Shown: in pieces, positions 4,503 through 61,503 of the stretch
Position numbering within the stretch: the first letter of the stretch is position 1
Layout of the letters: each line of letters starts with the position of its first letter
Origin: Mytilus edulis
Lineage: Eukaryota
Direction of reading: 5' to 3'
Assembly (NCBI RefSeq): GCF_963676685.1
Contig: NC_092346.1
Coordinates: forward strand, 35,526,001 to 35,590,000
Length of the DNA stretch: 64,000 nucleotides
Program-made: the position numbers and the translations under genes
Notes under the pieces: generated by a model
Seen by the model: the letters and a program-made list of their open reading frames with translations, nothing else
The model's database searches: none
What the model was told of the DNA's origin: nothing

Positions 4503-4517
4503 TATTGATAATACCGG

Positions 4518-4887: not shown

Positions 4888-7506
4888 TAACGGACACTAC
4901 CCTTCAGATGTTTACTTGTAAATAGTACTGCATTATCCTATTGAAGGCAATAGATATATTTAGTAATTATTTACACTTGGTTGCAAAAGTGTATGCCATA
5001 ACTTAATACCACAAAAATATCCTTGAAATAATGCATCCGAAATTTAAATATTTGAAGTCATAGTTCAAAAGTGATTGTTGCATGATGTCAGAAAATAATT
5101 CAAAGACCAATCTAAGATTAATTTGAGGCAAATTCAGCAAGTGTAAAAAGTCTATTATATTTGCCAATAAAAACTTTTAACAATCTCATGACAGTACTAA
5201 CTTTTCAATGGTAAGAACACTATTTTCTTGGAACAAATGAGATTCCATGATGAATCAGTGTCTTCATGATTTTTAAGTACAAATTCTAAGTCAGTCATGA
5301 TTTTATGGTGTAAGATGAGTGACTCCCCCTTTTCCTTATTATGAGTCCCTTCCCCCTCACCGATCAGCTTTCCTCATCATCTTCCATTTGTTGTTTCCAT
5401 TTCTTAGCCATAGCTAACAGTTTAAGATTTGGTTGAGAAGCTTCTTCATCAGAGAATATATAATCATGGTATTCTTCCCAGCCTGCATCAGACTGAAATA
5501 AAATGGTGGAAGATGTATTGATAATTTGGGAAAAGTTAATTTCTTCAATTTTAAAGCAATTAGATCATCCAAATGAATGCCATGTGTTTCTTTATGCATT
5601 TCAGATCAATCTTTAAAGACAATATATATGGAAGTTTTTTGGGGGGAAGTTAAAATATCAATGATCCCATGACCAAACTGATTTATTTTGACAATTTTCT
5701 TGACCTTAATTCTGACATTGCCTAAAGTTCAAAGCATACAACAGGATAATTTTAGAATAATTTCTTAATCATTAATAAAACCCTATTTAGAATTTTCCAC
5801 TTAATAATATGTTAAACTGCTTCTTGTCTTCATATGCTTAAAATAACATGTCAGTTTTCAAAAATATGATTGGTTCCCTTTCCCCATTTTATCAAAAATA
5901 TCCAATTCATTATTGTTTATAAAGAACAGGCATGGAAAAATATTGAAATTTTTTACAACACCATATGGAATATATCTTATCCAATAAAAAAAACCAAATT
6001 ATTTGATATGACTTTTTGAACAAGAACATCCCATAAACAAGCAGAGAACAAACCCCATCCTCTGTTTGGATTTTCCTCCTTTTCTTGATTTTCTGTGGCA
6101 TTAACTTGTCTACATGTTTACGTGTCTCTTCATCCCCATTATCTACCTGTAAATAAAAATAATAAGTTAATAGGTGAAACAAATCTTTGAAGTGTTCGAG
6201 TGGTCTAAGTAGTTCACTAGCATTGATCATTAACCTGTCAACACTCAGGTTTTGGAGTTTGAACCCCAGTCATAGCAGATCAAACTGCATAGGTCATTTC
6301 TTTATAAAACTTTAAAGTGAATATCTCTTAGTCCTAAACATTAATATGCGGAATTTGCATTCTAGGCCTAAGCTTTTTCAGAAAAAGCTGAAATTTTTTT
6401 TAGGCATATTTACCTAAATGGTCTTTCAACATAGTATGATTGTAATGTGGACAAAGGAAGATAACTCTGTTTTCAAACTATACTACTTTCACAAAGACAA
6501 TAATTTTAGAACATAACAAGGTGCATGCACCCTTCACATTTTATCTATATTTTTTTTTACATGCATGGTTATATAAATACATATAACTCTGCATATTTAA
6601 TATCTGAATTTATATTTCAATTGTAGATTTCTTGAAATATTAAGGGATATGATGTACAGATCGATCGAGTGTTTATCTCAAAAGTAGTGATAAAGTTTTT
6701 GAAAAATTGATAAGTATCAAGCAAGACATATTAGGGTTTGATACATCTGTGCAATCTTTCTCCCAATACTAGCAAGCATAAAATCTTCATTGAAGGGTAA
6801 TAACTCTCAAAAGGAGTCATTAAACATGTTAAATGGTTACAATCAGATTGGCATTTTGCAAATCTATTTCTATTCATTTTTGCAGTTGTTTCAATAAAGT
6901 TCAGTTAAAATACAAAAGACAAAAGCCATCACTTGAGAGACAATACCTCTGTAAGGATAGACATATATTTTTCTTACTTTTGCAATGCTAATATCAGTTT
7001 TGTAGAAACATAAAAAAGTCTAATTTGAAGGTATAAAAAACTCCTTTTAAAAGGGATTTGAGATGTAGCTCTACTGCTTGTGATCCTTTTAACTTGTACT
7101 GCTTTATTCCATTCCACTTTATTCCACAAATAATCGATTGCTGCATTTTAAGTTGAGATGATCTATTCAATAGATAACTATACCCAACAGTGCATCAATC
7201 AAATGTGTATCAATGTGAAAAATGCATAAGTAAGGTTACAAGGAAGAACAAGTGCCTTTTAAGCATAAAACCAAGGGACATTGTTGTACTTCATTAAAAT
7301 TAGTTCAATGGTTAAACTAACAAAGTAACAGACTGAATTACAATAAGTTGGTGTTGTTTTTAGTCTTTTGATTTATTTTTAAATGTGTAGAACCACAAGG
7401 AAAATTATTACAAATTCTTAATTGAACTGAGTGTTTTGGTAATGATCATAATGTCTATATGTTTTTTGCACCTAGATGTTGTTAAATGAATTGGGTACAC
7501 TCCATT

Positions 7507-7676
7507 TACTGTGGATTCATTTATTTTTGTGGTCATTTAATTTCGTGATTTTGCTGCAGTCATTATACAAGCCTTTATACAATTTGTCATCCATTGAACA
7601 TTTAATTTTGTGGTTCGCCTATAGCCACGAAATCCATGAAATTTGGTATCCAATGAATAATAATGAATCCACAGTA
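7507..7676. mobile_element. Short TA-flanked MITE
   Basis: TACTGTGGATTCATT ... AATGAATCCACAGTA terminal inverted repeats; relatives at ~20543-20751, ~40272-40482 and 60584-60807. Confidence 0.75.
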
Positions 7677-8098
7677 TCTTGCTTTTCAAGAACATTATGA
7701 TCTTGAAAATCGTGAAAAGACCCACTTCTTAATTATTTAAAATTTTGCATTGACAATAATATCTTGGTGTAAACTTGATACACCCATGCGGCTCACACCT
7801 TCAAGGTGTATCTAATAAATAAAAAGGACAATAATGTATTGCAAAAGGTCAGTTGAGGTGAGATTATTAGTAGAAAATGATATAAACCATTCTAAATACA
7901 TAAATTTCAATATCTATTGTATTATAATCGATGTTCTCAAATTTAAATATAAATTTTATACAACCACTGATTTAAATGCTCATTGTTATCATGTTATTAG
8001 TATATTAACTCTAAGTACAAGGGCATTTAACTTGTTGATCTTAACAACCCCAAAATAGATCAAACAAGGAAGTGAATTATCTGACACACCTGACAAAT

Positions 8099-9787
8099 AT
8101 GGCTTCCTCTCAGCCGTTTGGAGGAGGTCAAGTCCCTGTTAACTGTAAATTATGTGAAACAGATAGACCAATACAGTGGAAATGCATAGACTGCAGTATT
8201 CTGATGTGTGGTCATTGCAAGGAGAAGGTACATTCACAATTCAAAAATGCACAAGATCATAAGATCATAAAAAGAGAAGAGATTGGATTACATAGTGAAG
8301 AACTGGATTTTACCAATATCAAGTGTGATGAACATGCTGGACAATCATCATGCCTTTTCTGTAATACCTGTGACGTCCTTGTGTGTCCAACCTGTGTTGC
8401 TAAAGTTCATAAGAAGCATGATTTAATTGAAATTATTGATGAATACAAAATGAAAATTGATAAACTGAAAAAAGGACAAAATAAAATGCAAAAGAACAAC
8501 TTTAACATGAAAGAAAAGAGAAATGAGCTCAATAAACTTATGTCAGCAGAAAACTCAAAGTATTCAAAAGTAAGACAAGATATTCTTAAGCATGAGAAGA
8601 CTGTTAAAGAACAAGTAGACAAATATTTTAAGGAACTCTTAAATAAATTGGATCAAAGTCATGAAACTATTTTAACAACAGTTAAATCGGATCTTAATAC
8701 TATATCAATATTCACAAACCAGACAGAAGACAAAATCAACCAAGTCCAAGATTTTATTGAGATTACCAGTGCTACTGATTTCTTCAAAGGTGTTAAAGAG
8801 ATGGAGAATTCTACTGAAATCCAAAAACCACGAACCAAGCCAAGCTACACTTCTTCACCAAAATTTGTTCCAGGGAATGTTACCCAATCTCACATTGGAT
8901 CATTACAAGATGATTGGAACTTGTTATCAGAAATAAACATCTCCCTAATCATCAATAATCAATATCTGACTGAACTTGAAGCAATATTACATGTAAGTCC
9001 ATGCCTTGACCGGTCAATTTGGATAAGTTCTGGTAAACTTGGAATATTACAGAGAGTAAAACCTGAAGGAACCAATCTGAAGGTGCTGTCTACATTCAAT
9101 ATTGTAGTATATGGAATGGCAATTACCCATTCTTATCAACTGCTTCTGTGTGTTAAAGACAAAACAAGGTTACAACAAATCAGCAGTACTGGTGAACTGA
9201 CTGAATCTGTTTATGATGTAAAACCTTTCTTTCCCATAGCCATACATGTTATCAGTGAAAATAAACTTATAGTTGGAGCTTATGATAGAGAACTAAAAAT
9301 AGGTGCTGTGATAATTATGAACAAGAAAGGAGACAAGGAGGCTGTATATGAACATGATGAACATAATCAACCTTTTTTTAATAACCCTATGAATATAACC
9401 ACTACCTGTAATGGAAATATATATGTATTCGATAAGATTTCAGATGATTGGAATGATAAAGTAGTGGTCTTAGGACCAGGAGGTCATATAATAAACCAAT
9501 ACACAGGTCATTCAACCATTAACAGGCATGTACCATTCAAACCAGTAGACATTGTGAAAACACCAAGTGACAATGTTGTTGTGATAGATCTGAGTACCCA
9601 AATCTTACACATCCTCAATGACAATGGTAATTTTATTTCATATTTCAATACCAAGGACATAGGAATCAAATTTCCATATTCTATTGCTATCAACACAATA
9701 GGACAACTTTATATAGGATGTGGTAGGGCTGCAGGTAGTCAAACTAAAGATGCAAAGCTATATGAAATAAACATTGCAGGATTCTAA
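8099..9787 (+). CDS. RING-less TRIM-like protein copy 1 (B-box1, B-box2, coiled coil, NHL-like beta-propeller), 562 aa, nested antisense in a CRNKL1 intron
   Basis: Uninterrupted ORF from ATG 8099. B-box1 CKLC...CIDC-x4-CGHC...H...H; B-box2 CDEH-x7-CNTC-x4-CPTC...HKKH; K/E/Q-rich helical region; C-terminal beta-strand repeats (P..I.TT.NGNIYV.D, P.DIV.T..DNVVV.D, P.SIA.N..GQLYIGC). Confidence 0.9.
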   Translation: MASSQPFGGGQVPVNCKLCETDRPIQWKCIDCSILMCGHCKEKVHSQFKNAQDHKIIKREEIGLHSEELDFTNIKCDEHAGQSSCLFCNTCDVLVCPTCVAKVHKKHDLIEIIDEYKMKIDKLKKGQNKMQKNNFNMKEKRNELNKLMSAENSKYSKVRQDILKHEKTVKEQVDKYFKELLNKLDQSHETILTTVKSDLNTISIFTNQTEDKINQVQDFIEITSATDFFKGVKEMENSTEIQKPRTKPSYTSSPKFVPGNVTQSHIGSLQDDWNLLSEINISLIINNQYLTELEAILHVSPCLDRSIWISSGKLGILQRVKPEGTNLKVLSTFNIVVYGMAITHSYQLLLCVKDKTRLQQISSTGELTESVYDVKPFFPIAIHVISENKLIVGAYDRELKIGAVIIMNKKGDKEAVYEHDEHNQPFFNNPMNITTTCNGNIYVFDKISDDWNDKVVVLGPGGHIINQYTGHSTINRHVPFKPVDIVKTPSDNVVVIDLSTQILHILNDNGNFISYFNTKDIGIKFPYSIAINTIGQLYIGCGRAAGSQTKDAKLYEINIAGF

Positions 9788-37125: not shown

Positions 37126-37402
37126 TTTCATCAAAATGATAAATTATTGAAATATTGCAATTTTCAGGAGGAATGTTATATGAAGCAAAGTGTCTTGACA
37201 TGGTGACAATACACAATTTGTCAACATGACATTGCTGGGTGAAACAGGTCTATTCTAATTTTTGAAGTAGTTCAAATGTCAGCTCTAACATGATTGGTTA
37301 ATCCCCAGAATTGATCTAATCAGAGAATTTTAACATGAATATATCAGTTCAACAGGAACTTGGGTCATGGTCTTCTTCCTTATTTATATCTGTTGGAACA
37401 AA

Positions 37403-37992
37403 GGAGTAGGTCCAGTAAGACCCCTTTTTGGCCCCAAAATATAGCAGTTTTACAAAATTGTTAAAATGTAAACTTTTAGTTATTTATTGGATAGTAGAAT
37501 GGTTCTAGCTTATCGATCTGCTACATAAATATGGGCTGTTTTTGACAATAAAATGCACATATATTGGGAACTAGCACCATTAAGTCATGCTAAATTACTG
37601 AAATCTTTACAATTCCAGCATTTTAGTTAAATTTTAGATGGTTTCCGTGTAAAACGAAAGTGGCCACATTCGTGTTCATCCAAAATATTGAAATGGAAGT
37701 TGTATTTGATGATAATACATAACATATATAAAGATTGAGGATGAACAAGGATGCGGCCACATTCGTTTTTGACAAAAACCATCTGAAAAGTGACATTTTT
37801 CGCATATTTGGTAGATTTTTCATATTTGAGCTTGAATCGGATTGTTTTTAATGATTAAATAAGTTAAAATCTTTCACATAAATTAATTGAATCCTATGAA
37901 ATAGACACTTAAGTGTTTAAAAAGTGGTCAAAATCTTACGTCAGATGAAATTGAAATTTGAGACCAAAATCGGTCCTTACCGGACCTACTCC
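37403..37992. mobile_element. MITE, probably Spy-type, specific to unit B
   Basis: TIRs GGAGTAGGTCCAGTAAG / CTTACCGGACCTACTCC, flanked by AAA on the left and TTT on the right with no TSD; absent at the paralogous site ~63400. Confidence 0.75.
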
Positions 37993-40900
37993 TTTGTTCA
38001 TTTTAATTTTAATTTGCAGAGATAAGCTACAAAACAGAGTGGATTAATTTTTTCAGTGCACAGTTTAATTTACAAAATCATGATTGATTGGTTGTTGCTT
38101 GCGTGCTTAACGTCCAGTGGCATATATTTCATATATAATTTGGGACGACAACTAATAGAAATAAATACAGGTTATGAAAGGTACAGTAATTCAACAGAAA
38201 AGAAAGAAGGAAGTAAGAACTGCCACTGGAAAACGAGGTTATGCTGAGTAGAGGAAATTACGCTTAGCAAAAGGCGATCATAAGAAAGAAGTTGGACTGC
38301 AACTGGAAAACGAGTTTATGTTGGGTAGAGGGGAGATTTTCGCTTAGGAAAATGATACTCCTCACTCAGAAAGATGTTGCAAGGGTCCCTCATTGTGTAG
38401 AGAGCGCAACATATCCATCATGCATGGGTCTTTAAAAGTAACAACATCCCTACAAAATTTGGCCATCAGGATAAGAGAAATATAATGTCATTCTGTCTCT
38501 TCCACGATATATACTTTTCCCCATTGATTTCCAGATCTAAGAAACTGTTTGTTGAACCAGGAAGATCTTTTTCAGTGTGTACAATTTGGATATTGACACA
38601 TAACTACTCATGCAAGACTGGTTAAAATGTTTACAAGTGACTGATCAACAGACAACCGAAAATTATATCTACAATCTTCAGGATATTAGGTTAATATGCA
38701 TGAATTTTTGACTGTAACAACAGAAATAATAAAGTGCCATTCTGTGTTTATTCTTTATTTGTGCCTTTTGTCTTTTGTCTTTTTCTGTCCATTTTCTCTG
38801 TTATTTCTCATTTTAGTCTATTATTCTCTTTTCTGTAAACTCTATTTAGATCATCATAAGAAGAATGTCACTTTATCTATATACCAACACTTAAGTATCT
38901 ACCATTTCATTTTTATAAGGGGGCTATGATGTAAATTTTGTCAAGCTTTTTTTTTAGTTGTAATCTCTGTCTTGTCTTTTTATTTTTCACTCTATTAGGT
39001 TCTTCCTTTTTATATAAGCTTATCCTGACTTTTTTTTTACATAAATTGTCATCCTGCCTTTTTTTTAAATCAAAACTCCTGTCCTGCCTATTTCTTTCAA
39101 ATTTCATCCTAGACCCCTATAAAAATCAAACGGTAGCTTCCTGAAGATGTTTAAGAAAACTGAGTTAAATTTGTGTTGAAATCAAACTCTAAGCAAATTG
39201 TTATAAGAGGAAGGATATTGTGACATCTTCCATGATGATCAATCTGGCCAAAAGATCAGAAAAGAGGGTTAAATACTGGAAAAGTATAAAATAAAATTAA
39301 GCCTTATTGCAAAGTTTTATTTTAATTGGTTAAGTTGTCCGTGTGAAAATACAATTTTGGTACCTTTAAATCCCTTTGACTCAAATGAACATTCAATTTT
39401 ATGATGGTGAGCGAATTGCCACTAAAATAAGATCACTAAGTTGGACTACAAACATTTCCGTCATGTTTCATTTCAAAAAAGCAATTGGGTCATAAAAACT
39501 TCATACACTATTATCAAAATTCAGACTCAGAAATAAACCTTTCAAATAAACTGTGTGAGTGTTAAAAAAAATATTGCACAAGTCCAGAAAATGAAACTTT
39601 CCGATTTGATTCTCCTCTGAGTTCAGTATTTTTGTGATTTTACTTTTAGTTGAGGAAATCTTAATTTTGGTGTTACAAAAGAGAACACAAGTCCAATTTG
39701 CTAAAGACTCATTTATTTATAAAAATCTTGCATCACTTATTTCTCAAATATAAACATTTCATATCACAATCCTTACAAATGAAGCATTGTTCTTATATAT
39801 ATACCACTTTCACACTGTTCAATGTATACAAATGATTAACCAGCACTCACTCTTACAGTCATAGCACTTTTTCAAAATTAAGGAAGCCTTCTCACGATGA
39901 ATCTATAACTGACGCAACCCTTCAGATGTTTACCTGTAAGTAGTATACCATTATCATATTGAAGAATACAATAGAAGTATTTACATTTGTATGCAAATGT
40001 GTCCGCTATAACTTAAATCAATTAATAAAGTTAATACCACAAAAGTACCTCTGAAATATTGCACCCTCTTTTCTTAGATAAAATTTGGCTGCTTATATAG
40101 GGAATCACTGAAGCGGGTCCGGGAGCGGGCCCCAACTTATGAAAATTTCTGGATCCGCCACTGTTGCATCACTATTTTAAATACATAAAGTCATAATTTA
40201 AAAGTGATTGTTGCATAATTTCAGGAGATGATTCAGATACCAATCTAACATTAATTTGAGAAAAATTCAGCTACTGCGGATTAATTTATTTTCCTGTGTA
40301 CCAATTTTCGTGGATTGAGGAAAACTTGCAACTTTTTTGATATTTGATTTCATGGTTCACAATAGTCTGCATGTATTCATATTGCAAATTTGTGATTCGC
40401 TGAACATTTAAATTCATGGCTTACTTGTAACCCACAAAATCCAAGAAAATTGGTATCAATCGAATGATAATGAATTCACAGTTAGTATATAACAAAAGTG
40501 TAAATACGTCGATTGTATGCCAATAGAAACTTTTACTAAACTCATGACTGCATTAACATTTCAACGTTAAGAAATCTACTTTCTTAAAACAAATGAGATT
40601 CCATGAATTGATGGATCAGTGTCTTCATGATCTTTAAGTTCAAATTCTAAGTCAATCATGATTTTACAGTGTAAGATGAGTTACTTCCCCTTACTCTCAT
40701 TACATGAGTCACTCCCCCCTAACTGATCAGCTTTCCTCATCATCTTCCACTTGTTGTTTCCATTTCTTAGCCATAGCTAACAGTTTAAGATTTGGTTGAG
40801 AAGCTTCTTCATCAGGAAATATATAATCATGGTACTCTTCCCAGCCTGCATCAGACTGAAATAAAAAGGGGGAAGATGTATTGATGATTTGGGGAAATTA

Positions 40901-47123: not shown

Positions 47124-48818
47124 ATGGCTTCCTCTGAAGTGGTTGGAGGGGGTCAAGTTCCTATTAATTGTAAATTATGCAAAACAGATAGACCAATACA
47201 GTGGAAATGCACAGACTGCATTATTCTGATGTGTGGGTATTGCAAGGACAATGTTCATTCTCAATTCAAAAATGCACTTGATCATAAGATCATCAATAAA
47301 GAAGAGATTGGACTGCATAGTGAAGAACTGGATTTTACCAATATTAAATGTGATGACCACGCTGGACAATCATCATGTCTTTACTGTAATACATGTGACG
47401 TTCTCGTTTGTCCAACCTGTGTTGCTAAAGTTCATAAAAGGCATGATTTAATTGAAATTAGTGACGAATACAAATTGAAAGTTGAGAGACTAAAAAAAGG
47501 ACAAAGTAAAATGCAGAAGAGTAATTCTAACATGAAAGCAAAGAAAGATGAGCTCAATAGACTAGTATCAGCTGAAAATTCAAAGTATTCAAAAGTAAGA
47601 CAAGATATAGTTAGTCATGAGAAAACTGTAAAAGAACAAGTAGAAAAATATTTTAAGGAACTCATAAATAAATTGGATCAAAGCCACGAAACTGTTTTAA
47701 CATCAGTCAAAACAGATTTGAACGCCATATCAGTATTTACCAACCAAACAAATGACAAAATCAAGCAAGTCCAGGATTTTATTGACATTTCCAATGCTTC
47801 TGAATTGTTCAAGGAGGTTAAAACAATGGAGAAATCCACAGAAATCCAAGAACCACAAACCAAGCCAAGCTACAAATCATCACCAAAATTTGTTCCAGGA
47901 AATGTTACCCAATCAAACATTGGATCGCTACAAGATGATGGAAACTTGTCAGCAGAAATAAACATCTCCCTAGTCATCAACGATACATATCAGACTGAAC
48001 TTGAAAGAATAGCATTTGTAAGTCCATGTATTGACCAGTCAATTTGGATAAGTTCTGGTGCTTATAAGGTGTTACAAAGAGTAAAACCTGAAGACATCAA
48101 TCTGAAGGTTATATCTAAATTTGACATTACCCATAATGTATATGGCATGGCAGTTACTCCATCTCATCAACTCCTTCTGAGTGTTATAGGGAAAACAAGG
48201 TTACAACAAATCAGCAGTAGTGGTGAACTGATGGATTCTATTTATGATCTAACACCTTTCTATCCCAAAGCCGTCCATGTAATCAGTGACAATAAACTTA
48301 TAGTAGCAGCTAGTAATAATAAACTAAAAAGAAGTGCTGTGATCATAATGAACAAAAAAGGAGACAAGAAGACTGTATATGAACACGATGAACATAATCA
48401 ACCTTTATTTAATAAACCTAGGTATATAACAACCACCAGTAATGAAAATATACATGTAGTGGATAAGATTTCAGATGATTGGAGTGGTAAAGTAGTGATC
48501 TTAGGACAAGAAGGAAACATAATAAACCAGTATACAGGTCATCCAACTATCAATAAAAGTGAACCATTCATACCAGTAGACATTGTGACAACACCAAGTG
48601 ACAATGTTGTTGTGATAGATCTGGATACCAAAATCTTACACATCCTCAATGACAATGGTCATTTGATTTCATATTTCAATACAAAGGACATAGGAATAGA
48701 ATTTCCATATTCTCTAGCCTTCAACACAACTGGACAACTTTATATAGGATGCAATAAGGCTGCAGGTAGTCAAACTAAAGAAGCAAAACTATATGTAATA
48801 AACATTGCAGGAATCTAA
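47124..48818 (+). CDS. RING-less TRIM-like protein copy 3, 564 aa, nested antisense in a CRNKL1 intron
   Basis: Uninterrupted ORF from ATG 47124; same domain motifs as copies 1 and 2. Confidence 0.9.
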   Translation: MASSEVVGGGQVPINCKLCKTDRPIQWKCTDCIILMCGYCKDNVHSQFKNALDHKIINKEEIGLHSEELDFTNIKCDDHAGQSSCLYCNTCDVLVCPTCVAKVHKRHDLIEISDEYKLKVERLKKGQSKMQKSNSNMKAKKDELNRLVSAENSKYSKVRQDIVSHEKTVKEQVEKYFKELINKLDQSHETVLTSVKTDLNAISVFTNQTNDKIKQVQDFIDISNASELFKEVKTMEKSTEIQEPQTKPSYKSSPKFVPGNVTQSNIGSLQDDGNLSAEINISLVINDTYQTELERIAFVSPCIDQSIWISSGAYKVLQRVKPEDINLKVISKFDITHNVYGMAVTPSHQLLLSVIGKTRLQQISSSGELMDSIYDLTPFYPKAVHVISDNKLIVAASNNKLKRSAVIIMNKKGDKKTVYEHDEHNQPLFNKPRYITTTSNENIHVVDKISDDWSGKVVILGQEGNIINQYTGHPTINKSEPFIPVDIVTTPSDNVVVIDLDTKILHILNDNGHLISYFNTKDIGIEFPYSLAFNTTGQLYIGCNKAAGSQTKEAKLYVINIAGI

Positions 48819-51881: not shown

Positions 51882-54800
51882 GAAGTTGTTTCAGGCTCAG
51901 TTATCTATTTTTTTTCAGTTGGTTTGACATTTATGTAAATCTTATATTGCTGTTTACAGTTTTTGGGATCTGCTTACCCATCCAGGACACCTGTTGTGAG
52001 ATCACGCCCAGTTTTTGGTGGGGTTTGTGTTGCTTAGTCGTTTTCTAGGGTGTGTCTATATATCATTGTTTGTCTTTCAGTCATTTTCCTTTTTTGGCAA
52101 AAGTGTTGTCAATTTATTTTTGACTGTGGTATGGGCTTTGTTCATTGTTGAAGGTCGTACAGTGACCTTTAGTTGTTAATGTCTGTGTCATTTTGGTCTT
52201 TTGTGGATAATTGTCTCATTGGCAATCATACCACATCTTCTTTTTTGTATTATTAATTTGAATGTTACTTTGGTATATTTTGCTTCTCTTTACCTACACA
52301 TTATTTTGTTTTTGAGTTGATAGTCAAAATTAGCCTCATGCAATGACTCATTTTAGTCATCCAAAGGTTTTGGTTAAATGGGCATTTTTTTTATATATCT
52401 TATAGTTCTGTTCATTTTTTATTTACTAGTTTCTATCTATCAAACATGATTTTGAGTTATTGGCCAAAAAGAGGCATACTAGCCTAAAATTGACATCTGA
52501 AGGCAATCTGGTAATTTTGATGCAAACAGGAAGAAAATAGAGATTGTGGATCCAAGCATTTGTGTCCCAGTTTGTTTCTTTTTAAAACAGTTCTAAAAAA
52601 AAAGAATGTGTTCATAATTCACAGATGTCCCACTGGCGCTATCTTTATGTTTAGTGGACCGTAAATTTAGGGTCACAACTCTCTAATTTGTCATTAAAAT
52701 TAGAAATATCAAACCAAAGGAAACATGTGTACTAAGTTTCAAGTTGATTGGACTTTAACTTCATCAAAAACTACCTTGACCAATAACTTAAACCTGAAAC
52801 AGGACAGACAGATGAATAGATGAACAGATGAAGAAATGGACAAAGGAACAGAAACAAAGACCAGAAAACATAATGCCCCATAGTTGTGGGGGCATAAAAA
52901 TAAAACCATTAATGAATTTTATCAATATCTTTTATCTTTAACCAAAGTGACCATGTTTGTTGACCACAAACTTTATATTATGATCATTCACTTAAGCTTG
53001 GCTGAAATTAGTTCAGTGGTTTCCCATTAGAAGATCTTTGATAAAGTTTACGACAATGCACAACCATGATGGAAGCCAAGTAATAGCAATAGCTCAGATA
53101 GCCTTTGAGCCAGTTGAGCTTAAAATTAAAGGGCAATCAAGAAGCCATGTAACCTCACAACCAGACTTTTATTCAGATTTCAAACTAAAAAAAAATCTTT
53201 TTGCTTCCTGATAGTAGAGGAATTTTATAGTCCTTTGTTTGACCTAGTCAGAGATGGAAGCAATCATTTCCTGTTTACATATTGTCAAAGAGGGTGTTTA
53301 AATCATCAAAAACTTTAAAGATGAACAAATGTAAAAGAAGTTATAGCTCTTATGGCCTTTGGGGTCGGTTAGCTTATGATTCATCGATTTTTAATATTAA
53401 AAACAACTTTCAGCAGACTTCTACTTCATTGCCACCACCTTTTATTGGTGGAGGAAGCAATATATAATGCAATTCTAGGCAAGAGTTCAACACACATTGC
53501 ACAAGAGTGGTTCAAAACCAAAACCTCAGTGTTGATAGACTGGTGATCACTGTAAATGAAACACTAAGACCACTCCATCACAAAGTAGCTGGTTGGCTTT
53601 AATACGAGTAAATCATTTTATTAAAGCTTTAATGAGTTAATCAATTTATTAAAGCTTTAATATGAGTAAATCAGTGTATTAAAGCTTTAACATGAGTTAA
53701 GCAATTTTTAAAACAGAATACTACTGTATGTCAAATTCTATTAGCAAATTTACCTCAAATTCCTGCCAAGATTCCAATAACATAAGTCTCTCTTCTTTTT
53801 CTCCTGTACTTTTCATAGCATTATTTGCCTCTTTGTACACAGTTCTGGCTTTTTCAATACAGCTGTCTTCTCCTGTTGTTTTCTAAAACTGACCAAAACT
53901 TATCAAAACCTGCAAAGAACAACCAAAGTCAAATTCTGATATTTTTTTAAAAGTTGGATCTAATTATAAAGCTCAACTTTGTAAGACAAGACAGGATACT
54001 AAAATTGAGAAAAGAAATTGGGACTGTGTCAAAGTGACAACAACCCTACCATAGAGCAGACAACAGCCAAAGGCCACCAATCGGTCTTCAATGTAGTGAG
54101 AATTCCCGCACCTGTAGGTGTCCTTCAGCTGGCCCCTAAAAATATGTATACTAGTACAGTGATAATGGATGTCATACTTAACACCGAATTATACACAAGA
54201 AACTAAAATTAAAAATCATCAAAATATCAAGACTAATAAAGGCCTGAGGCTCCTGACTTAGGACAGGCGCAAAAACTGTGGCGGGGTTAAACATGTTTAT
54301 GAGATCTCAACCCTCCCCCTATACCTCTAGCCAATGTAGAAAAGTAAACGTATAACAATACGCACATTAAAATTCAGTTCAAGAGAAGTCCGAGTCCGAT
54401 GTCAAAGATGTAATGGCTGATTTTAGCAAAGTCTTTAAAAGACCAAAGATAAATTCTGCTGCTTAAACAAGCATTTTAAATTATGTAAAGAAATCATGGC
54501 AGATCTAGTTTTAACTGCAAATACATGGTGATCTCCCCTCCTTTATATATTATTGTAGGATAAGATAAGACTACACAAATTAAGGAAGGGATAATTTAAA
54601 AAAACTATAAGATTTTATAGAACAAAATATGTTTTTTAGTTTAAAAAACAAATAAAAAACCCCCATTAAAAATCTTTTTGTAGAGATAAAGGGTAAGTAA
54701 ACCCCAAAAAACAAAACTTCATTAAAAATGTAAATAAATATAAGAAACAAATCTTGTGATCCTTTGGTTTGTATGGTGATTTTTCTCAAACTTGTCTGTC

Positions 54801-57800
54801 AAAATATTTGTTTCTAATATTCTAAATGAGAAATCATAATAATTATAGAATAACTAATCGAAAACTTCAAATAGAGAAAAATATTCAACGAGTGACCGAA
54901 GAACACATTCACGAATGCCATAGCGCATGAGTTAAGTATCATTATGGTATGACGTCAGAGAGTGAAATAACCACAACAACAGGGGCTGAACCTTTTATAT
55001 ATTCTCATGCATTAGTACTTCATGAGATCCTTGCCTAATGTTCATCTAATCATATCATTTCTTTTAAACACAATATAGAATAGTAGTATGTATTACCTTC
55101 ACATGCTTTGTTCGTTGTAACAAACGTCGGTACAGATTTCTCACTTTATCAAATTCCTCCTGTTCTATCTGAAAATCAATGTAAGATTTCCACAAGACTT
55201 CAGGCATATCTAACTGCTGCTGATTTATAGCGAGTTCATAAATAGCTTCTGCCCGGTCTATATCACCCAATATCGTCTCTAACTGCATACTGTAAAAAAA
55301 TTAAAATAAACTATGTTCAGTTATATCAAAAACTTTAAAAAAAAAGTTTTTATAAAGAGGAATAAAATCTAAAGATAAGTATTACATTTATATACATTAA
55401 GATATTTGATAATACCCAAACTGTTCTCATATTTCTCGAGAAACAAGGGCATTAACTGTTGCAAAATTAATGTAAATTCCATAAAAATCTAAATTATGTT
55501 ATGTCTATGCTGACAATAAAAATCTAACATAATTAGTAAAAAGAATTAACGGACCAACAGAAAAAGAAAACTCAATTTGAATGCATAAGTATACACCGAA
55601 GTAAAATAAAACATTTTAACTATTCTAGATTTTATCATTAAGAAAATATCTAGGACCAAATGTTATAAAGACATCATGAAATAGCAATTTCAACTAATTT
55701 AACACTTGAAATCACTGAATTTGGCACAAATATCTTCGTTCTATTGTAATTTTCCAGGAGCTCTATATCATGAACATAAACTTGGTATGAAAGTTGTCAA
55801 AATTATACTGCCTACCTTGATCCAACTTGTACAATTTTCTGGTACAAATTCTCGAAATTTTTCATACAATATCCTACATCTTTCGAACTCTCTCAGCTGT
55901 AATTCTAGTTCTATATAGCCTCTGTACAATTTGTTTTTTTGACATTTACCTACAGCTGTACCTTTAAAAGAAAGTTTACAAGATATATAATAAATATATA
56001 TTCTATATTGATACTTTGCTCTACAGATGCTTTTTTTCAATTTTAATTATTCCAAAACATTATTATCTGTCTTTTAAAATTTCAGTCTTCACATGTAGCC
56101 ACTAGTCCAAAAACATACATTAGTAATACTTTTTTTGGACAAGTAAGTGCAAAATTTTGTTAAGATACATTACAAAAATATCAGAATACTAGTCTTCGGA
56201 CTAGTGGTTGGGAAAGATTTTGGTGCAGACTGAAATTTCAGACAAACATAAAGTTTCCAAAACAAACATTCTTTTAAAATGATGTATTTGATTTTTTATC
56301 AAGCTACTTATAAAACTTATACAATTTCTATTATAAAAAAATACAAGTACACTTTCTACTAATTAAATTCTATGAATTTAATATCAATAATAAGATCTTA
56401 CCATCACTCTCCTGGCTCCTTGTAAACTTTTCTGACGAATTTCAAACTGAGCAAATAAAAGCCAGATTTTAGCAAATGTAAATGTTTTATGAGGTATCAC
56501 ATCTGAACATGCTTTAAACACTTCTCTGACTTTATCAGGATCATCATTTTCTAATTCTTCATAAACAGCATAATTGATCCATAAATATATGTATCTTCTC
56601 CAATGGCGTTTCTCCTAGAAAACAGATATTTTTAAATCAAAAATAAATGTAGAATCCGTCTATAGGACCTAGAGATGCCTCTGCTTGCATATAAGGTTAT
56701 AAGGGCACATATCTCAAGAATGAAAAAGTGAGTTTTGTGGTAATAAGCATTGTTAATAAGTTTCATAATATTTGGTTGAGTCAAACTTTAGCTCGAGAAC
56801 AGAAATGTAAAATTCAGAAATTTTTCCTTTAGGAGCATAACTCTACAATGATAAAAGTGACGCCAAGCAAATTCAAACTGGATCTGTGTTTAGTGGGTAT
56901 AAACATTTGGTTGAGGCAAACTAAATGTAATTAATGTATAATAATTAAATTTTGATTGAAACATTTCTTCTGATTGGCTGACGTTTATTAGTTTATCAGC
57001 CCATAGACATAATTTAGTCATGTGAACGTGACGTCATCAACATTTTTTCATGGTTTACTCTGGTTTAAATGAAATTTAGAATTAAATTATAAGAAATAAC
57101 CGAAATATTTTATCTGTCTATCCTAATAACATAGAAAAAATGTGGTGGACACTTTAAAATAACCCGCTACGCACGTTATTCAGTGTGCACCACATTTTTG
57201 ATGTTATTTCTTCATACAGAGTTTACTGACTTTGTTTTTGTTTGTGTTTTTTTCTGGGAGGTAAGCTACTAAAACAGCATATTTGGCCCGACTGTATGGT
57301 CATGTGCCTGTCCAATGTCAATACCATTCAGCAAATGTCTAAGTGATTTTGTTCATGAGGGAACTTAGTTGATGGCAAAGATCTCTAATAGCACTGACAT
57401 GCATTCTTTTGCTGAATATTTACCGTACTTGAAATACAATCTTAAATCAAGATAAAATTTACTATATTTCTACAATAGACTTTATCCTGTCACAATACCA
57501 ATCACTGAAAACCAGCAAGTTCATTTTCACATGGTATGTGCGTAAAAAAAAAAAAAATACATCAACAAATTTTGATTTTGTAGCACAACTTTTTTTTTTT
57601 ATCTTACTTTAGATGGAGGTACATTTGCTATCGCTCTTTCATATGTTTCTCTAATTTGTTCTGTATTTCCATCTGCCTCTAACAACCTCAGATAATCAAA
57701 CCAGGCATCATAATTATAGGGATTAGTTTTCACTTTCTGAAAAATAGAATATTATCTGTAAATTTTACTAACTAAATACACATACAACTTTATAAATAAT

Positions 57801-58257
57801 CAGCTTGAATATTACTGTTATCATATCATTGGTGTAAAGATATAAATCAATTGTAAATTGGTGTTTTAAAGCCACCTTAAAGCACCACTTTTGGCCTATT
57901 TCTTGGCAGTCATTTTATGGGCGGAAGAAACCTGAGTCCCAGAGAAAAAACCCACTGACTTTGTGTAGGAAAACTGACAATCCTACTCAATTTAGTCAAG
58001 TGCACCTGCACAAGCAAGGTTTGAACACACAAACTCAGTGTTAAATTGAGATTTGTTTTGTTTTGTTTTGTATTGACTAAGCTTTAGTTTCTCAACTTAT
58101 TTGTTTCCATATGCTGATATGGCAAACCTAAACCCCTTATATATTCCCTTAGCTTAAAATTTGATATTAAAAAAATATTTCATAATAGCAATATAATTTG
58201 TGCCTATCTCATCATTAATCATCAATGGCGATAAATATTTAAAAAAAAGAGCCTTAA

Positions 58258-59289
58258 GGAGGATCGTGGGTATAAGATTTTCAGAAAAAAATTAAACATT
58301 AATTTTTCATTACAAATTTTATTAACTACCTTAAGTAGTTGTTACTTTATCATATGTTACAAAAATCATTCCAAACAAGAATGTGTCCACAGTACACGGA
58401 TGCCCCACTCGCACTATCATTTTCTATGTTCAGTGGACCGTGAAATTGGGGTCAAAATTATAATTTGGAATTATAGTTAGAAAGATCATATCATAGGGAA
58501 CATGCGTACTAAGTTTCGAGTTGATGTAACTTTAACTTCATTAAAAACTACCTTGACCAAAAACTTTAACCTGAACTTCGCACTATCATTTTCTATGTTC
58601 AGTGGACCATGAAATTGGGGTAAAAACTATAATTTGGCATTAAAATTAGAAAGATCATATCATGGGGAACATGTGTACTAAGTTTCAAGTTGATTGGACT
58701 TCAACTTCTTCAAAAACTACCTTGACCAAAAACTTTAACCTGAAGCGAACGGACGGACGGACGCACAGACGGACGCACAGACGATCGGAGGCACAGACCA
58801 GAAAACATAATGCCCCTCTACTATCGTAGGTGGGGCATAAAAATCAATTCGTGTTGGCCCCAGGTTACTTTTAAAATGTAGATATCATTGAAAAAGCTCT
58901 AAATTATCTCCCTTTGGTGCAAAAATGCCACTTTTTGGCATTAAAATTGTAACATCTTTTTTAACTCATCGGTGACCGATATTTTTTATTGTTGTTTTTG
59001 AAAAAGCTGTACACAAGCTAAATAATTGAAAAATTTTAGCGATTTCTGTAATTTAGTTCTTTTTTTATTTTGATATTACTGCTTTTTCTCCTACTAGTTC
59101 AACAGAAAAAAAAAGACATAAACAAAAATGTATGCTTCTTTCGAAGGCAGATTGTGAGCCTAAATGAACGGTGACTCCATTTTTTTATTTCATTTTTCTA
59201 TTAAGTATAAGATTAAGTTCATTTATAGAAAAATATAGAGAAATCCTATATTGGATAAAAAAAAAATTGATTTAGACCCGTGAGCCCCC
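58258..59289. mobile_element. Non-autonomous TIR element, possibly Kolobok-like, interrupted by a HINE
   Basis: TTAA|GGAGGATCGTGGGTATAA ... TTAGACCCGTGAGCCCCC imperfect TIRs; the right-hand TTAA is not preserved. Confidence 0.45.
58373..58843 (-). mobile_element. Young HINE nested in another element
   Basis: Two ~169-bp internal repeats, (GGAC)n tract, ATGCCCC...GGGGCATAAAA hairpin end and matching sub-TIR ATGCCCCAC near the other end; lies in an A-run. Confidence 0.82.
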
Positions 59290-59347
59290 TCCCTCTATAT
59301 TTTGTATTCAAAACTAAAATGTAAAATGAAATATTTTGGTTGTCACT

Positions 59348-60165
59348 ATTATAGCGAACCCTACGATAGTTTTCCATAGATTCACCTGCAAGTTACCTGT
59401 CGATTTAAACTTTTGGCAGTTCTATTGTCCCATCTAACAAATACAACAGGTATTGTTCTCTGTATAGTTTATTCACCAGGACCTTTAAATTTCTTCTAGG
59501 AGAAATATATCACTCATTGATTAATTTACCTGAACAAAAAATTGAACTGTCAATGATGGAAAAATACTTATACCAATACTAAGAAAGGACTCACAAAACT
59601 GCATGTGGTGTTATTTATTCAATACCAAAAACTCGTTTTTAATGTGTTCAATATTAATAATGAGTTAAAAATTAAAAGTTGATTTCTGATCAAATATTCA
59701 ATAAATATTGTTGTGTGTTTGATAAATAAAAATTTGAATATTATTATTTTTAAATTAAGGTCTTCATAAACATAGTCAATAAATTAACAACAAAAAAAAC
59801 ATGCAAATTCATTGGAAAATACTAAAAAATGTGTCTAAAATAAACTTTTTATTATTAAATCAGATTTTATATTGAACAGATTGAAAATATATTAATGATA
59901 TATTGAATAAATACAATATTGCATACAGTTTATGTGAGTTTATAGAAGTATTTCAATAAAAAAACAGATAATTTTTTGGTCAGGTAAATTAATCAATGAG
60001 TGATATATTTCTCCTAGAAGAAATTTAAAGGTCCTGGTGAATGAACTATACAGAGAACAATACCTGTTGTATTTGTTAGATGGGACAATAGAACTTACAA
60101 AAGTTTAAATCGACAGGTAACTTGCAGGTGAATCTATGGAAAACTATCATAGGGTTCGCAATAAT
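59348..60165. mobile_element. Foldback/MITE with ~195-bp near-perfect TIRs
   Basis: 59348-~59542 is the reverse complement of ~59970-60165 with few mismatches; very AT-rich core. Confidence 0.88.
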
Positions 60166-60583
60166 TATAATTTTCAGGAAACATTCTTGACAGTTAAAAG
60201 ATAGAGGACGCAATGTTTAAATCTATAAATATAATTTTTACATATACTGAGTATTTCTATAAATCCATACCTCTTCATATTTAAATTTTCTTTTACTGAC
60301 AATAAAATCCTCTATAGCTGCACGACTACCAAATTTCTTCTCATGGACGGTATAATGTTTGTATATTTCTTGACAACTATCTTTTGGAAGATGATCTAAA
60401 GCATATTTGTAAATCAACCTGGCTCTCTCATGCTGAAAATAAAACAACATTTAATATGCTGAACAGTGATGTTGGCCAGAGAATAAAAACATCATAGTCA
60501 TATGAAAATAGAGTGCCATGTTTTTCTCTCAGTTCAAAAACCCTAAAAAAAAAGGTCCAAATATTTGGCTGCTATTTTCTATC

Positions 60584-60807
60584 TACTGTGGATTCATTAT
60601 TATTCATTGTATACCAATTTTTTTGTGGTTTTCATGGGTTCAGGTGAACCACCAATTTGAATGTTCAACGAATTACAAATTTTCTATCACTATGTATACA
60701 GACTTTGGCAAAACCCCTAAATTAAATATCCACTAAATGAATATAAATGGCAAGTTTACTGCAATCCACCAAAATTGGTACCCATGAAAATAAATGGATC
60801 CACAGTA
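60584..60807. mobile_element. TA-flanked MITE of the 7507-7676 family
   Basis: TACTGTGGATTCATT ... AATGGATCCACAGTA; absent at the paralogous site in B. Confidence 0.75.
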
Positions 60808-61503
60808 TTTAAAATTTTATTCTTATAGCCTCAATCAGCATTTCTTTTATTCAACATTAATTTATGATGTTTGGGTTCAATTGACTTTATAAAGTTCTCA
60901 TTGAATCAGTTCAAATGGTTTTCTGTTTTTTAAATTTTGGTATTCCTTACCTGATGCACTATAAAGACCAATTCTCATTTTGAAACTTATTCTTAGAAAC
61001 AAAACTAAATAAAGTGTGGTTTAATCGCCAATAAGACGTTTAATCACCAATAAGACGTTTAATCACCAATAAGACATCTATCCACCAGAAACAAAAGTAC
61101 AAAGATGTATCTATTTTGATCATTTCTTGAATTTTGATATTTTTTTTATTTCTTTTGATTCATTAATTTCAGTTCTCTCAATTGGAACGTCTGTCTTCTC
61201 ACTATATGTGAGAACAGAAGTGACCATGAGCATGAAAAGATTTTTGCAGTTTAGCAAAATTACTATAAAATCTTTACCCTTTTAAGTCTGATATATCATT
61301 AGTGTTGGTTTAACAGTACTTACTTCTTTTTGGCCTTCCTCAAACTTAGCAAAAGCAACAACAAGTCTTTCATCAATGTTATCTTCACCAAAGAATTCCA
61401 CATCTCTCTCATAAACTCGTCTAGCACTACTGATATAACTGTTTTTTCTCTTCAAACTTAGCATATTTGATCCAGTTCTTCACCTCATGATGTACTAGGA
61501 CAA

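Follow-up and report, generated by a model that had tools for sequence, protein, structure and literature searches.

Why should the 3' end of a splicing-factor gene recur along a mussel chromosome, each time enclosing a second gene on the opposite strand, and which of the two partners is being kept? The window analysed here (64,000 nucleotides of Mytilus edulis, C3:35.526-35.590 Mb) contains three of the six units of such a tandem array. Every unit in the window carries the 3' exons of CRNKL1 on the minus strand and, in the penultimate intron, a TRIM-like open reading frame (ORF) on the plus strand. We consider it probable that the array is the product of tandem segmental duplication, in which the TRIM frames have been under selection and the CRNKL1 pieces have travelled as passengers.

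Organization of the array

Direct repeats spaced 16.0 and 23.0 kb apart divide the window into three units, here called A, B and C. The repeats, the ORFs and the exon alignments agree with one another and bear out the arrangement given in the preliminary description of this DNA, namely three tandem units with CRNKL1 exons on the minus and TRIM-like ORFs on the plus strand. Position 5364 is the end of the stop codon of unit A and position 61503 is the first base of unit C exon 7. That description had also proposed extending the contig to count the units and to find a full-length CRNKL1. The extension gave six units, including the intact gene past the window end, with a present spacing of 16-29 kb. 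Coordinates marked "ext" refer to the window plus the adjoining DNA, where ext x is chromosome position 35526000+x; no runs of N were encountered. The TRIM site lies between exons 13 and 14 of the 15-exon CRNKL1, in intron 13. Genome-wide, exon 15 occurs six times, exon 13 five times, exon 10 four times and exons 5 and 6 once each; all genomic copies of the exons counted fall within the array.

The units are separated by spacers, one of which is contained entirely in the window:

36253..40726, minus strand: spacer between units B and C, from the junction at the start of unit B intron 6 to the distal end of the unit C copy of the CRNKL1 3' flank

This spacer is homologous to those between units C and D, D and F, and F and the parent gene. 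Units A, B and C have a common interspersed-repeat insertion at an identical site, which suggests that they form a later subgroup. An Rfam search with a repeat of high coverage at 28.0-29.2 kb gave no match. At ext 65661-67272 there is a stretch similar to the fifth intron of the intact gene, but it recurs inside unit D; it was rejected as part of a unit and is more likely a mobile element.

The intact CRNKL1 gene

The sole intact CRNKL1 has 15 coding exons and lies 55-77 kb past the window end (ext 116949-141169, minus strand). It holds a TRIM of its own, again in intron 13, which answers the question raised earlier of whether the full-length gene bears the nested gene in the same intron:

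ext 121459-123147: TRIM of the intact gene, between exon 14 (117576-117668) and exon 13 (128398-128553)

The exons were mapped with bee Crn (P0124) as the reference; they were searched singly, and the spliced model was translated to check the reading phases. A protein search with the same bee sequence for a mussel CRNKL1 protein returned matches almost all from insects. The exons of the intact copy align to residues 12-673 of the 688-residue insect Crn, and an exon-10 query matches residues 526-596 of human CRNKL1 from spliceosome structures (E 5e-35). Orthology to the HAT-repeat protein CRNKL1 is found for the intact copy alone. Exon 6 of the gene lies at C3:35662065-35662187. Its intron 6 is of the U12 type (AT-AC) with the donor ATATCCTT, and both human and mouse CRNKL1 have an AT-AC U12 intron with the donor ATATCCTT (MIDB supplement, PMC6717393). 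The exon 6/7 junction was considered as a possible defect of the intact gene and rejected as such, the seemingly non-canonical sites being those of the AT-AC U12 intron. In its alignments and in this intron the mussel gene is like CRNKL1/crooked neck/Clf1, the NineTeen-complex-associated HAT-repeat splicing factor, but it differs in having five downstream 3' fragments and a TRIM nested in intron 13. The substitutions on the branch of the intact gene are 19 synonymous to 4 nonsynonymous, distributed 1:0:22 over the three codon positions.

The truncated CRNKL1 copies

The truncated copies, which we call shells, were aligned exon by exon to the intact gene, and all lesion calls derive from these alignments. 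The shell exons in the window are as follows:

5364-5492 and 6054-6146, minus strand: unit A exons 15 (including the stop codon) and 14, intact, with AG/GT sites; 97.7% and 99% identity, no indels
15523-15678, 16866-17060 and 17562-17708, minus strand: unit A exons 13, 12 and 11, intact
20992-21120 and 21668-21760, minus strand: unit B exons 15 and 14; 98.5% and 92.8% identity to the intact gene, no indels
29796..35792, minus strand: unit B exons 13, 12, 10, 9, 8 and 7, with seven lesions
40727-40855 and 45213-45305, minus strand: unit C exons 15 and 14, placed by alignment to the intact gene
53754..61503, minus strand: unit C exons 13-7, with four lesions

Unit A consists of exons 11-15 only, all of them lesion-free, and its exon 15 belongs to the set of exactly six found genome-wide. 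Its homology to the gene ends at about 18068 in intron 10, with exons 7-10 gone; about 3 kb of the spacer that precedes unit B has also been lost to a deletion. In unit B, exon 7 has a 26-nt deletion, exon 8 carries +2/-3 changes, exon 9 contains a TGA at 33570-33572, exon 10 has lost 2 nt, exon 11 is missing, the donor of exon 12 reads TT, and exon 13 has lost 1 nt. The U12 intron of this unit retains the AC acceptor and has one change in the branch site. In unit C, the intron between exons 15 and 14 has grown to 4.4 kb by repeats at 42055-45058. Exon 13 contains a TAG at 53883-53885, exon 12 has lost 2 nt, the acceptor of exon 11 reads AA, and exon 7 has gained 1 nt within a run of A, a homopolymer change that is possibly an assembly error. 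Both the U12 branch site and the AC acceptor of unit C are intact.

The alignments reproduced every lesion listed previously, as well as the loss of the upstream exons from unit A. Units B, C, D and F have 3-7 disabling lesions apiece, lost exons among them, and none of the three copies in the window has complete CRNKL1 coding capacity. Both splice sites are retained in 33 of the 35 shell exons, and introns 7-14 are present and partly alignable. The possibility that the shells are retrocopies was rejected because the introns are retained. With introns and splice sites kept, the 5' end lacking, independent lesions gained and the parent gene adjacent, the shells are truncated, disabled copies of the kind known as unprocessed pseudogenes.

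Origin of the shells

All five copies are downstream of the intact gene, and all are without exons 1-6. Their shared breakpoint coincides, to about 5 nt, with the 5' end of the U12 intron 6. Exons 5 and 6 are single-copy in the genome, and the 5' end of intron 6 is where all the copies begin; each would therefore have been a 3' fragment lacking a promoter ever since the first duplication. The shells, judged from these junctions, are incomplete from birth and are not degraded whole genes, and the original proposal that the host shell had decayed from a whole gene has to be given up.

By combining these observations, it is possible to describe how the array may have formed. The rightmost unit would represent the starting state: an intact CRNKL1 of 15 exons on the minus strand, whose intron 13 houses a TRIM-NHL-like gene that lies on the other strand and has neither introns nor a RING. 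Five head-to-tail duplications, all placed 3' of the intact gene, would then have copied a block that extends from about 3.3 kb past the CRNKL1 stop codon as far as the opening bases of the U12-type intron 6. Because all introns are kept, this was most probably a segmental duplication at the DNA level rather than retrocopying, and it would have produced the six-unit tandem array. Each copy would have received a complete TRIM gene preceded by a conserved stretch of about 200 nt, and CRNKL1 exons 7-15 only, without the promoter, the start codon or exons 1-6. The TRIM frames would then be held open by selection for an intact protein, acting weakly on the amino-acid sequence and most weakly on the propeller. 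The CRNKL1 pieces, as unprocessed truncated pseudogenes, would each gather their own stops, frameshifts, deletions and losses of splice sites. At a later stage, tracts may have been shuffled among the units, the intact gene included, by non-allelic gene conversion or by unequal crossing-over.

The nested TRIM-like proteins

The TRIM ORFs of the array encode 561-565 residues with the order B-box, B-box, coiled coil and NHL propeller, and no RING. The three ORFs in the window, earlier reported to be open, are indeed so, each with an ATG start:

8099..9787 (frame open 8072-9787), plus strand: ORF A, 562 aa, identical to the annotated protein P0006
24133..25827 (frame open 24106-25827), plus strand: ORF B, 564 aa, identical to P0001; the copy that was modelled and checked against RNA runs
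47124..48818 (frame open 47097-48818), plus strand: ORF C, 564 aa, in the same 90% cluster as P0002

Pfam places two B-boxes in each window copy, PF22586 at residues 25-65 and PF00643 at residues 82-120. PF00643 is above the gathering score in A, B and C, and PF22586 in A and B, with C scoring 26.4 against a cutoff of 27. The Cys/His zinc ligands of the B-boxes are invariant among 53 relatives. Pfam detected no RING in the window copies, whose ORF starts 15 residues before the first B-box, and the annotated relatives of 557-564 aa match B-box families only. The missing RING argues against autonomous E3 activity of the encoded proteins.

The AlphaFold model of ORF B (mean pLDDT 84) predicts a C-terminal beta-propeller preceded by a coiled-coil region with an unbroken helix at residues 112-220 and a further one at 225-238 (pLDDT 84-90). 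In a Foldseek search the best PDB matches of the propeller were the NHL domains of TRIM3, TRIM2 and TRIM71 (E 3e-14, TM normalized to the target 0.73-0.75). The Pfam NHL model stays below threshold in the window copies; PF01436 matches some relatives (P0060, P0067 and others), and several relatives are labelled "TRIM71-like" by RefSeq. The mussel copies thus resemble the TRIM-NHL proteins (TRIM2, TRIM3, TRIM71/LIN-41, Brat, Mei-P26) in their B-boxes, long coiled coil and six-bladed NHL-type propeller, but lack a RING, and hence an evident E3 ligase module, and also lack a filamin domain. Canonical TRIM-NHL genes are conserved and single-copy, whereas the mussel gene is intronless, has a fast-evolving propeller, and is one of dozens to hundreds of family members in Mytilus.

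Selection on the two partners

The two partners of the array differ most clearly in the integrity of their frames. There are no disabling lesions in 8.4 kb of TRIM ORF and 17 in 5.2 kb of shell exons (Fisher P 8e-8); at the shell rate, the five TRIM ORFs should together show 27.5 lesions. All six TRIM ORFs of the array (about 10 kb) are free of stops and frameshifts, and every indel in them is in frame. The joint probability of seeing no stop among the 307 terminal-branch substitutions of the TRIM genes under neutrality is 3e-6. Pairwise omega of the TRIM genes is lowest in the B-boxes (0.16-0.42) and highest in the propeller (0.32-0.69), with an overall value of 0.30-0.46.

The substitution ratios tell a different story. 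On terminal branches, synonymous and nonsynonymous changes number 108:199 in the TRIM genes and 35:66 in the shells (Fisher P = 1), so that the dN/dS contrast between nested and host exons that had been suggested as a check is absent. The shell changes comprise 35 synonymous and 62 nonsynonymous substitutions and 4 stops, spread 37:22:42 over the codon positions, and the shells are, from these sequence counts, under relaxed constraint. With dN/dS alike on the terminal branches, the case for selection on the TRIM genes rests on frame integrity and on the expression of one copy. The earlier statement that selection retains the nested gene while the host exons are passengers is accordingly borne out by the lesion counts, the in-frame indels and the presence of TRIM B in RNA-type libraries, but not by dN/dS. 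Open TRIM frames beside broken host exons, in-frame indels and TRIM B RNA together suggest that the host exons are passengers.

The equal ratios could also mean that the TRIM copies are unselected as well, being young or refreshed by conversion, with frames open by chance and both partners drifting. Copies A and F, taken singly, fail to reject neutrality on the synonymous fraction (P 0.25 and 0.12), and recent conversion tracts exist. Nevertheless, dS among the TRIM copies (0.19-0.37) equals or exceeds that of the host, and stops and frameshifts are still confined to the shells; TRIM indels are always multiples of three, and the B-box ligands and B-box omega speak of constraint. What drift does to this ORF can be seen in a copy relocated to 37.8 Mb, which has gained a stop. 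We therefore regard drift of both partners as very unlikely.

Expression

The RNA evidence for TRIM B consists of unstranded Logan contigs and concerns this one copy. In three RNA-type runs from three studies (X1, X6 and X4), contigs span about 24200-26270 with about 98-99% identity to TRIM B. They cover the ORF and about 300-450 nt downstream of it, and the flanking intron is uncovered. Unit B exon 13 is essentially uncovered in the same three runs. The raw RNA run X21, which bears another species label, has no TRIM B reads at a likeness of at least 97% and about three reads on unit B exon 13, on the side expected for minus-strand RNA, which are too few to carry weight.

Mosaic structure and possible functions of the shells

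Divergence among the shells is lower in the exons than in the introns. Shell exons are 3-8% apart and the introns 5-30%; shell-to-shell omega is 0.14-0.34 with dS near the intron divergence, and the terminal shell branches show a synonymous excess over the neutral expectation (P = 0.003). The units themselves are uneven. Intron distances within a given unit pair range by segment from 4% to more than 30%, sliding windows reveal tracts of 97-99% identity adjoining tracts of 80-88%, and some sites are shared in patterns such as BD|CP. The units are most likely mosaics made by conversion or unequal crossing-over, which would be the cause of the low divergence of shell exons relative to introns. 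Gene conversion is also a plausible source of the synonymous excess, and an earlier function of the CRNKL1 fragments may be an alternative source of the constraint.

It has to be asked whether the fragments are functional now, or were so recently. Read-through transcripts might be spliced from the exon 6 U12 donor to the AC acceptor of a shell exon 7, giving "poison" or alternative C-terminal halves, or the shells might encode short HAT-repeat proteins. Of the shells, four include exon 7; in each of them the U12 branch site and the AC acceptor have been retained in an otherwise diverging intron, and the low shell omega points the same way. The survival of splice sites in most shell exons might be added, but it agrees with a terminal divergence as low as about 2-3%, and the five clean exons of unit A have a probability of about 0.1 under the shells' own lesion rate. 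Gene models P0121 and P0122 in older M. edulis and M. galloprovincialis annotations are predictions, not transcripts. The few raw minus-side reads on unit B exon 13 are set against its lack of coverage in the runs that do cover TRIM B. The units have no promoter or start codon, and four of them bear multiple disabling lesions. Functional fragments are, on this evidence, improbable.

Similarly improbable is a pair of proposals in which the shells are not mere debris, each having retained a U12 intron 6 that is nearly complete. Splicing of exon 6 to a shell could yield frameshifted "poison" isoforms and thereby a minor-spliceosome-dependent brake on CRNKL1 output; or the shells could be under indirect purifying selection, as conversion would threaten the essential parent in a very large population. 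If true, either would explain why shell exons are 3- to 6-fold less diverged at nonsynonymous than at synonymous or intronic sites, and the poison-isoform proposal might also bear on the position of the breakpoint at the U12 5' splice site. The reading of the shells as passengers of a selected TRIM gene is preferred here.

The array as a genomic structure

Mussel genomes are highly heterozygous, with presence/absence variation, and an array such as this could in principle result from divergent haplotypes, or collapsed or expanded repeats, wrongly joined in tandem. Units A, B and C are just about 5% apart in some introns, and one lesion, the extra base in unit C exon 7, lies in a homopolymer. 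Most segments, however, are 10-30% apart, and unit length, repeat insertions and lost exons vary by unit. Among the six copies of exon 15 and the six TRIM ORFs, the one identical pair is exon 15 of B and of F. The closest protein elsewhere to ORF C is LOC143069828 of M. galloprovincialis, which a quick tree joins to C as its sister, leaving B outside. In M. galloprovincialis, two TRIMs of the array clade and a model of a crooked-neck fragment are each found on a contig of 495,008 bp, and array-clade TRIMs are multiple in two other species. An assembly artefact is thus extremely improbable; given the sister of ORF C and the gene models on M. galloprovincialis contigs of that one length, the array is not an assembly slip.

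The wider TRIM family

The array TRIM has at least 77 full-length relatives in the genome. About 30 of them lie at C3:31.8-33.0 Mb in clusters without CRNKL1 exons, and a genome-wide search found no CRNKL1 exon 10, 13 or 15 outside the array. The copies at C3:31.8-33.0 Mb share with the array copies only the ORF, about 170-190 nt upstream and 60 nt downstream. The suggestion that the CRNKL1 intron was the cradle of the whole family was therefore rejected.

Genes nested in introns are known, for example in NF1 intron 27b, and the mussel TRIM is likewise antisense to its host. The mussel locus differs from known partial-duplication pseudogenes and nested genes in that a nested gene and a host fragment were co-amplified six-fold, leaving a retained gene beside a built-in pseudogene control. 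Literature searches found no paper on such co-amplification for CRNKL1 or mussel TRIMs, and nothing specific on mussel or oyster TRIM expansions or nested-gene duplication. Tandem arrays of fast-evolving TRIM genes, namely the teleost finTRIM genes and the primate TRIM5/6/22/34 cluster (PMC3137616, PMC2533329), are comparable: they too show local tandem duplication and mosaic conversion, and their constraint is weak mainly in the C-terminal domain that binds the ligand. In the mussel proteins, by contrast, the C-terminus is an NHL propeller instead of B30.2/SPRY, there is no RING, and the duplicated block is set by a host intron, with host exons dragged along.

The locus can be regarded as a natural paired experiment, in which two parts of one block, of equal age and in an equal mutational environment, have fared differently, the gene being open six times and the fragment broken five times. 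Ordinary dN/dS is uninformative for this fast-evolving TRIM-NHL family of the mussel, and the shells can serve as a neutral standard within the array itself; the array is also a concrete case of a bivalve TRIM-like repertoire growing through local segmental duplication and conversion. What is known of TRIM and CRNKL1 function is unchanged; tandem duplication with truncated passengers is a standard mechanism, and in this respect the case is fairly ordinary. Its practical consequence is for annotation: such fragments are the source of the Mytilus "CLF1/crooked neck" models of 153 and 308 aa.

The CRNKL1 array

The minus-strand stop-free segments flanking each nested TRIM ORF translate as crooked neck/CRNKL1, and one of them corresponds to residues 526-596 of human CRNKL1 in spliceosome structures (E 5e-35). 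The window corresponds to C3:35526001-35590000 of Mytilus edulis. The 120 kb past the end of the window was added to the analysis, giving 184 kb in total with the window (ext x below is chromosome position 35526000+x). This extension contains the full-length gene for which the preliminary description had proposed to search. The complete CRNKL1 occupies ext 116949-141169 on the minus strand, and its 15 coding exons cover residues 12-673 of a 688-aa insect Crn in the alignment. The intact gene has its own nested TRIM ORF (ext 121459-123147, plus strand) between exons 14 and 13, which is the penultimate intron and the same position as in the units of the window.

Alignment of the intact locus to the 184 kb maps five copies of the gene, every one of them 3' of the gene and in identical orientation:

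ext 89.8-113.6 kb, unit F
ext 67.3-87.0 kb, unit D
ext 39.4-61.8 kb, unit C
ext 19.7-36.3 kb, unit B
ext 4.9-18.1 kb, unit A

Genome-wide searches, in which the exons were queried one at a time, find exon 15 six times, exon 13 five times, exon 10 four times and exons 5 and 6 once each. All these matches lie inside the array, and M. edulis thus has a single complete CRNKL1 alongside five 3' fragments.

The duplicated block and its boundary

In units B, D and F, the likeness to the gene stops no more than about 5 nt from where intron 6 begins, and gives way to the 3' flank of the next unit, joined at its distal end. The shared breakpoint lies at:

window 36190-36260, unit B
ext 86977 (locus L003), unit D
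ext 113595 (locus L005), unit F

The spacers between the units are mutually homologous. Together with the breakpoint at intron 6, this defines the amplified block, with one boundary about 3.3 kb beyond the stop codon and the other at the 5' end of intron 6, so that no copy ever carried exons 1-6, the promoter or the start codon. The shells (the CRNKL1 3' exons of each copy) were incomplete at birth and are not whole genes that later decayed. Every intron is kept, which identifies the copies as DNA duplications and rules out a retrocopy origin. The mechanism is tandem segmental duplication, probably with gene conversion.

The splice sites of CRNKL1 are canonical in every intron but intron 6, which is a U12-type AT-AC intron (L008:1587-2064, C3:35661587-35662064, minus strand) with the donor ATATCCTT and the branch site TTCCTTGAC 11 nt upstream of the AC acceptor. 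When it is read as AT-AC, the CRNKL1 protein runs ...IYERFVLVHPEVKNW..., matching other animals. Entries in the MIDB supplement of PMC6717393 list a minor intron of the same kind in human and mouse CRNKL1. The U12 branch site and the AC are kept in shells B, C, D and F (for B and C, upstream of window 35792 and 61503), and the remainder of intron 6 has diverged. The chance of a random breakpoint falling this near a junction is about 1% for a 24-kb gene with 28 exon-intron junctions, an estimate made post hoc; we know of no mechanism that would place a breakpoint at a U12 5' splice site.

An interspersed repeat of about 190 nt occupies an identical site in A, B and C only (12723-12913, 28200-28400 / 28600-29000 and 52681-52878), which makes these three units a later subgroup. 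The repeat has at least 3,854 first-look candidates genome-wide and no match in Rfam; its depth in RNA runs is very high, from thousands up to tens of thousands, and chimeric joints are numerous. Unit A is without exons 7-10 and without about 3 kb of the next spacer, consistent with a single later deletion.

Lesions in the shells

Exon-by-exon alignment of the shells to the intact gene gives the following lesions:

Unit B: exon 7, -26 nt; exon 8, +2/-3; exon 9, TGA at 33570-33572; exon 10, -2; exon 11 absent; exon 12, donor TT; exon 13, -1
Unit C: exon 7, +1 (in a run of A; possible assembly error); exon 11, acceptor AA; exon 12, -2; exon 13, TAG at 53883-53885
Unit D: exon 9, -4 and TGA; exon 10, TGA; exon 11, -38; exon 13, -7
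Unit F: exons 8 and 10-13 absent; exon 7, three indels
Unit A: none in exons 11-15

The lesions and coordinates of the preliminary description are reproduced. Its picture of a decaying host shell holds for the lesions but not for decay from whole genes, since all copies were truncated from birth.

The nested TRIM ORFs

Direct-repeat analysis of the window bears out three tandem units in the same orientation, spaced about 16.0 and 23.0 kb from start to start, each with an open nested ORF:

8072-9787, plus strand, open TRIM ORF A (ATG 8099)
24106-25827, plus strand, open TRIM ORF B (ATG 24133)
47097-48818, plus strand, open TRIM ORF C (ATG 47124)

The three proteins have 562-564 aa. Pfam assigns residues 25-65 to an ANCHR-like B-box and residues 82-120 to a classical B-box, and detects no RING in the TRIM ORFs. 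An AlphaFold model, made for copy B only from an alignment of 53 relatives (mean pLDDT 84), is helical at residues 112-220 and ends in an all-beta propeller, whose top Foldseek matches are the NHL domains of TRIM3, TRIM2 and TRIM71 (E ~3e-14, TM 0.73-0.75). The RING-less order of B-box, B-box, coiled coil and propeller read from the sequence alone was thus correct.

Tests for selection in the TRIMs and the shells

The reading frame is open in each of the six TRIM ORFs, and the length of every one of the few indels is a multiple of three. The shells carry 17 stops or frame-breaking indels per 5,222 aligned nt. At that rate about 27 lesions would be expected in the five co-duplicated TRIM ORFs (8,450 nt), and none is observed (Poisson 1e-12, Fisher 8e-8). 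The contrast holds even with an inter-copy dS of the TRIMs (0.19-0.37) that equals or exceeds that of the host exons. Pairwise omega of the TRIMs is 0.30-0.46 overall, with 0.16-0.42 in the B-boxes, 0.17-0.42 in the coiled coil and 0.32-0.69 in the propeller.

The dN/dS contrast between nested and host exons that had been proposed is absent: synonymous and nonsynonymous copy-unique changes number 108:199 in the TRIMs and 35:66 (four stops included) in the shells (Fisher P = 1). On the branch of the intact gene the ratio is 19:4, with 22 of 23 changes at third positions, and the shells are therefore clearly relaxed relative to their parent. Synonymous change in the shells nevertheless lies above the strict-neutral prediction (P = 0.003), and shell-to-shell omega is 0.14-0.34. 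The shell exons are 3-8% apart in a star-like pattern, and the introns of the same units 5-30%. The probable explanation is patchy gene conversion, partly from the constrained parent, which would bring in synonymous-only differences and refresh the exons; a period of past function of the CRNKL1 fragments is an unlikely alternative. Frame integrity and, in part, RNA support the view that the nested TRIM is kept by selection with the host exons as passengers, but dN/dS does not discriminate. The value of the array is that of an internally controlled example.

Mosaic structure of the units

The units of the array are mosaics. Within one pair of units the intron distances vary several-fold among segments, and site patterns such as BD|CP (P, the parent) recur. 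Around the TRIMs, tracts of 97-99% identity adjoin tracts of 80-88%. TRIM B (23900-26300) matches A (7900-10200) at 94-98% between -217 and +195 and again over the 3' flank, and matches C (46900-49300) at 97-99% from +1095 through the 3' flank; unit C upstream of its TRIM resembles the intact unit. In the A-B comparison, identity over the propeller-coding part is 82-91% (82-88% for the most part), lower than in the adjoining 3' flank, where it is up to 97-99% in places. Synonymous sites of the A-B propeller have diverged as well (dS 0.23), which points to different histories and not to positive selection alone.

RNA coverage of TRIM B

Logan contigs from three RNA-type runs of three studies, one a PacBio transcriptomic library, cover copy B between about 24.2 kb and 26.1-26.3 kb, with about 98-99% identity to B where the paralogues differ by at least 10%. 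The contigs of these runs have no internal joints and cover neither the surrounding intron nor exon 13 of B. This indicates that TRIM B, the one copy examined, gives an mRNA without introns whose 3' UTR is about 300-450 nt long, the contigs being strandless. A raw-read RNA run with the other species label gave no signal on TRIM B.

The TRIM family beyond the array

At least 77 TRIM relatives were scored as matches among 2,237 first-look candidates. About 30 copies, 74-80% identical, lie at C3:31.8-33.0 Mb, where genome-wide searches with exons 10, 13 and 15 find no CRNKL1 exons. For two of these members, likeness to the array copies is confined to the ORF with about 170-190 nt before it and about 60 nt after it. 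A quick tree places the six array copies with proteins of M. galloprovincialis and M. trossulus in a clade apart from the 32-Mb cluster (SH-aLRT 92), with copy C sister to a M. galloprovincialis protein. The intron is thus the site of one six-member sub-cluster and not, as had been proposed, the cradle of the family.

Two TRIMs of the array clade and a fragment model of 308 aa named "crooked neck" come from M. galloprovincialis contigs of identical size (495,008 bp), which suggests that the shell/TRIM arrangement is present in that species too. A separate locus 2.2 Mb away (L013:1762-6242, C3:37804261-37808741) holds a 4.5-kb piece of intron 13, with the TRIM and about 2.4 kb of downstream intron but without host exons; its identity to units A, B and C is about 86-88%, and its ORF has one TAG.

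Gene models and repeats around the units

Two public gene models are built of shell exons with the broken ones skipped: P0121 (CAG2248373.1, M. edulis "CLF1", 153 aa) and P0122 (VDI25570.1, M. galloprovincialis "crooked neck", 308 aa). In P0121, exons 7-8 are unit B-like and exon 10 has the parent's sequence, suggesting allelic or conversion differences among individuals.

Transposon genes lie to the left of unit A, and likeness to the CRNKL1 3' flank starts only at 4886:

889-2091, plus strand, YqaJ-type exonuclease ORF
2152-3294, minus strand, DDE_Tnp_4/HTH_Tnp_4 (PIF/Harbinger-type) transposase ORF
3456-3761 and 4281-4520, putative THAP-like segments, from translated sequence alone

Intron 13 of unit B contains a 126-nt tandem repeat of at least six copies (22086-23015). 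In unit C, a periodic repeat family of 500-700 nt (42055-45058) expands intron 14 to 4.4 kb and occurs again in intron 13 (51218-51796). A 1.6-kb part of the intact gene's intron 5 (L008:2280-3902) recurs with 95.5% identity between C and D (ext 65661-67272) and in part inside unit D (ext 78444-78854; loci L001 and L002). It is probably a young mobile element and not part of the duplication unit.
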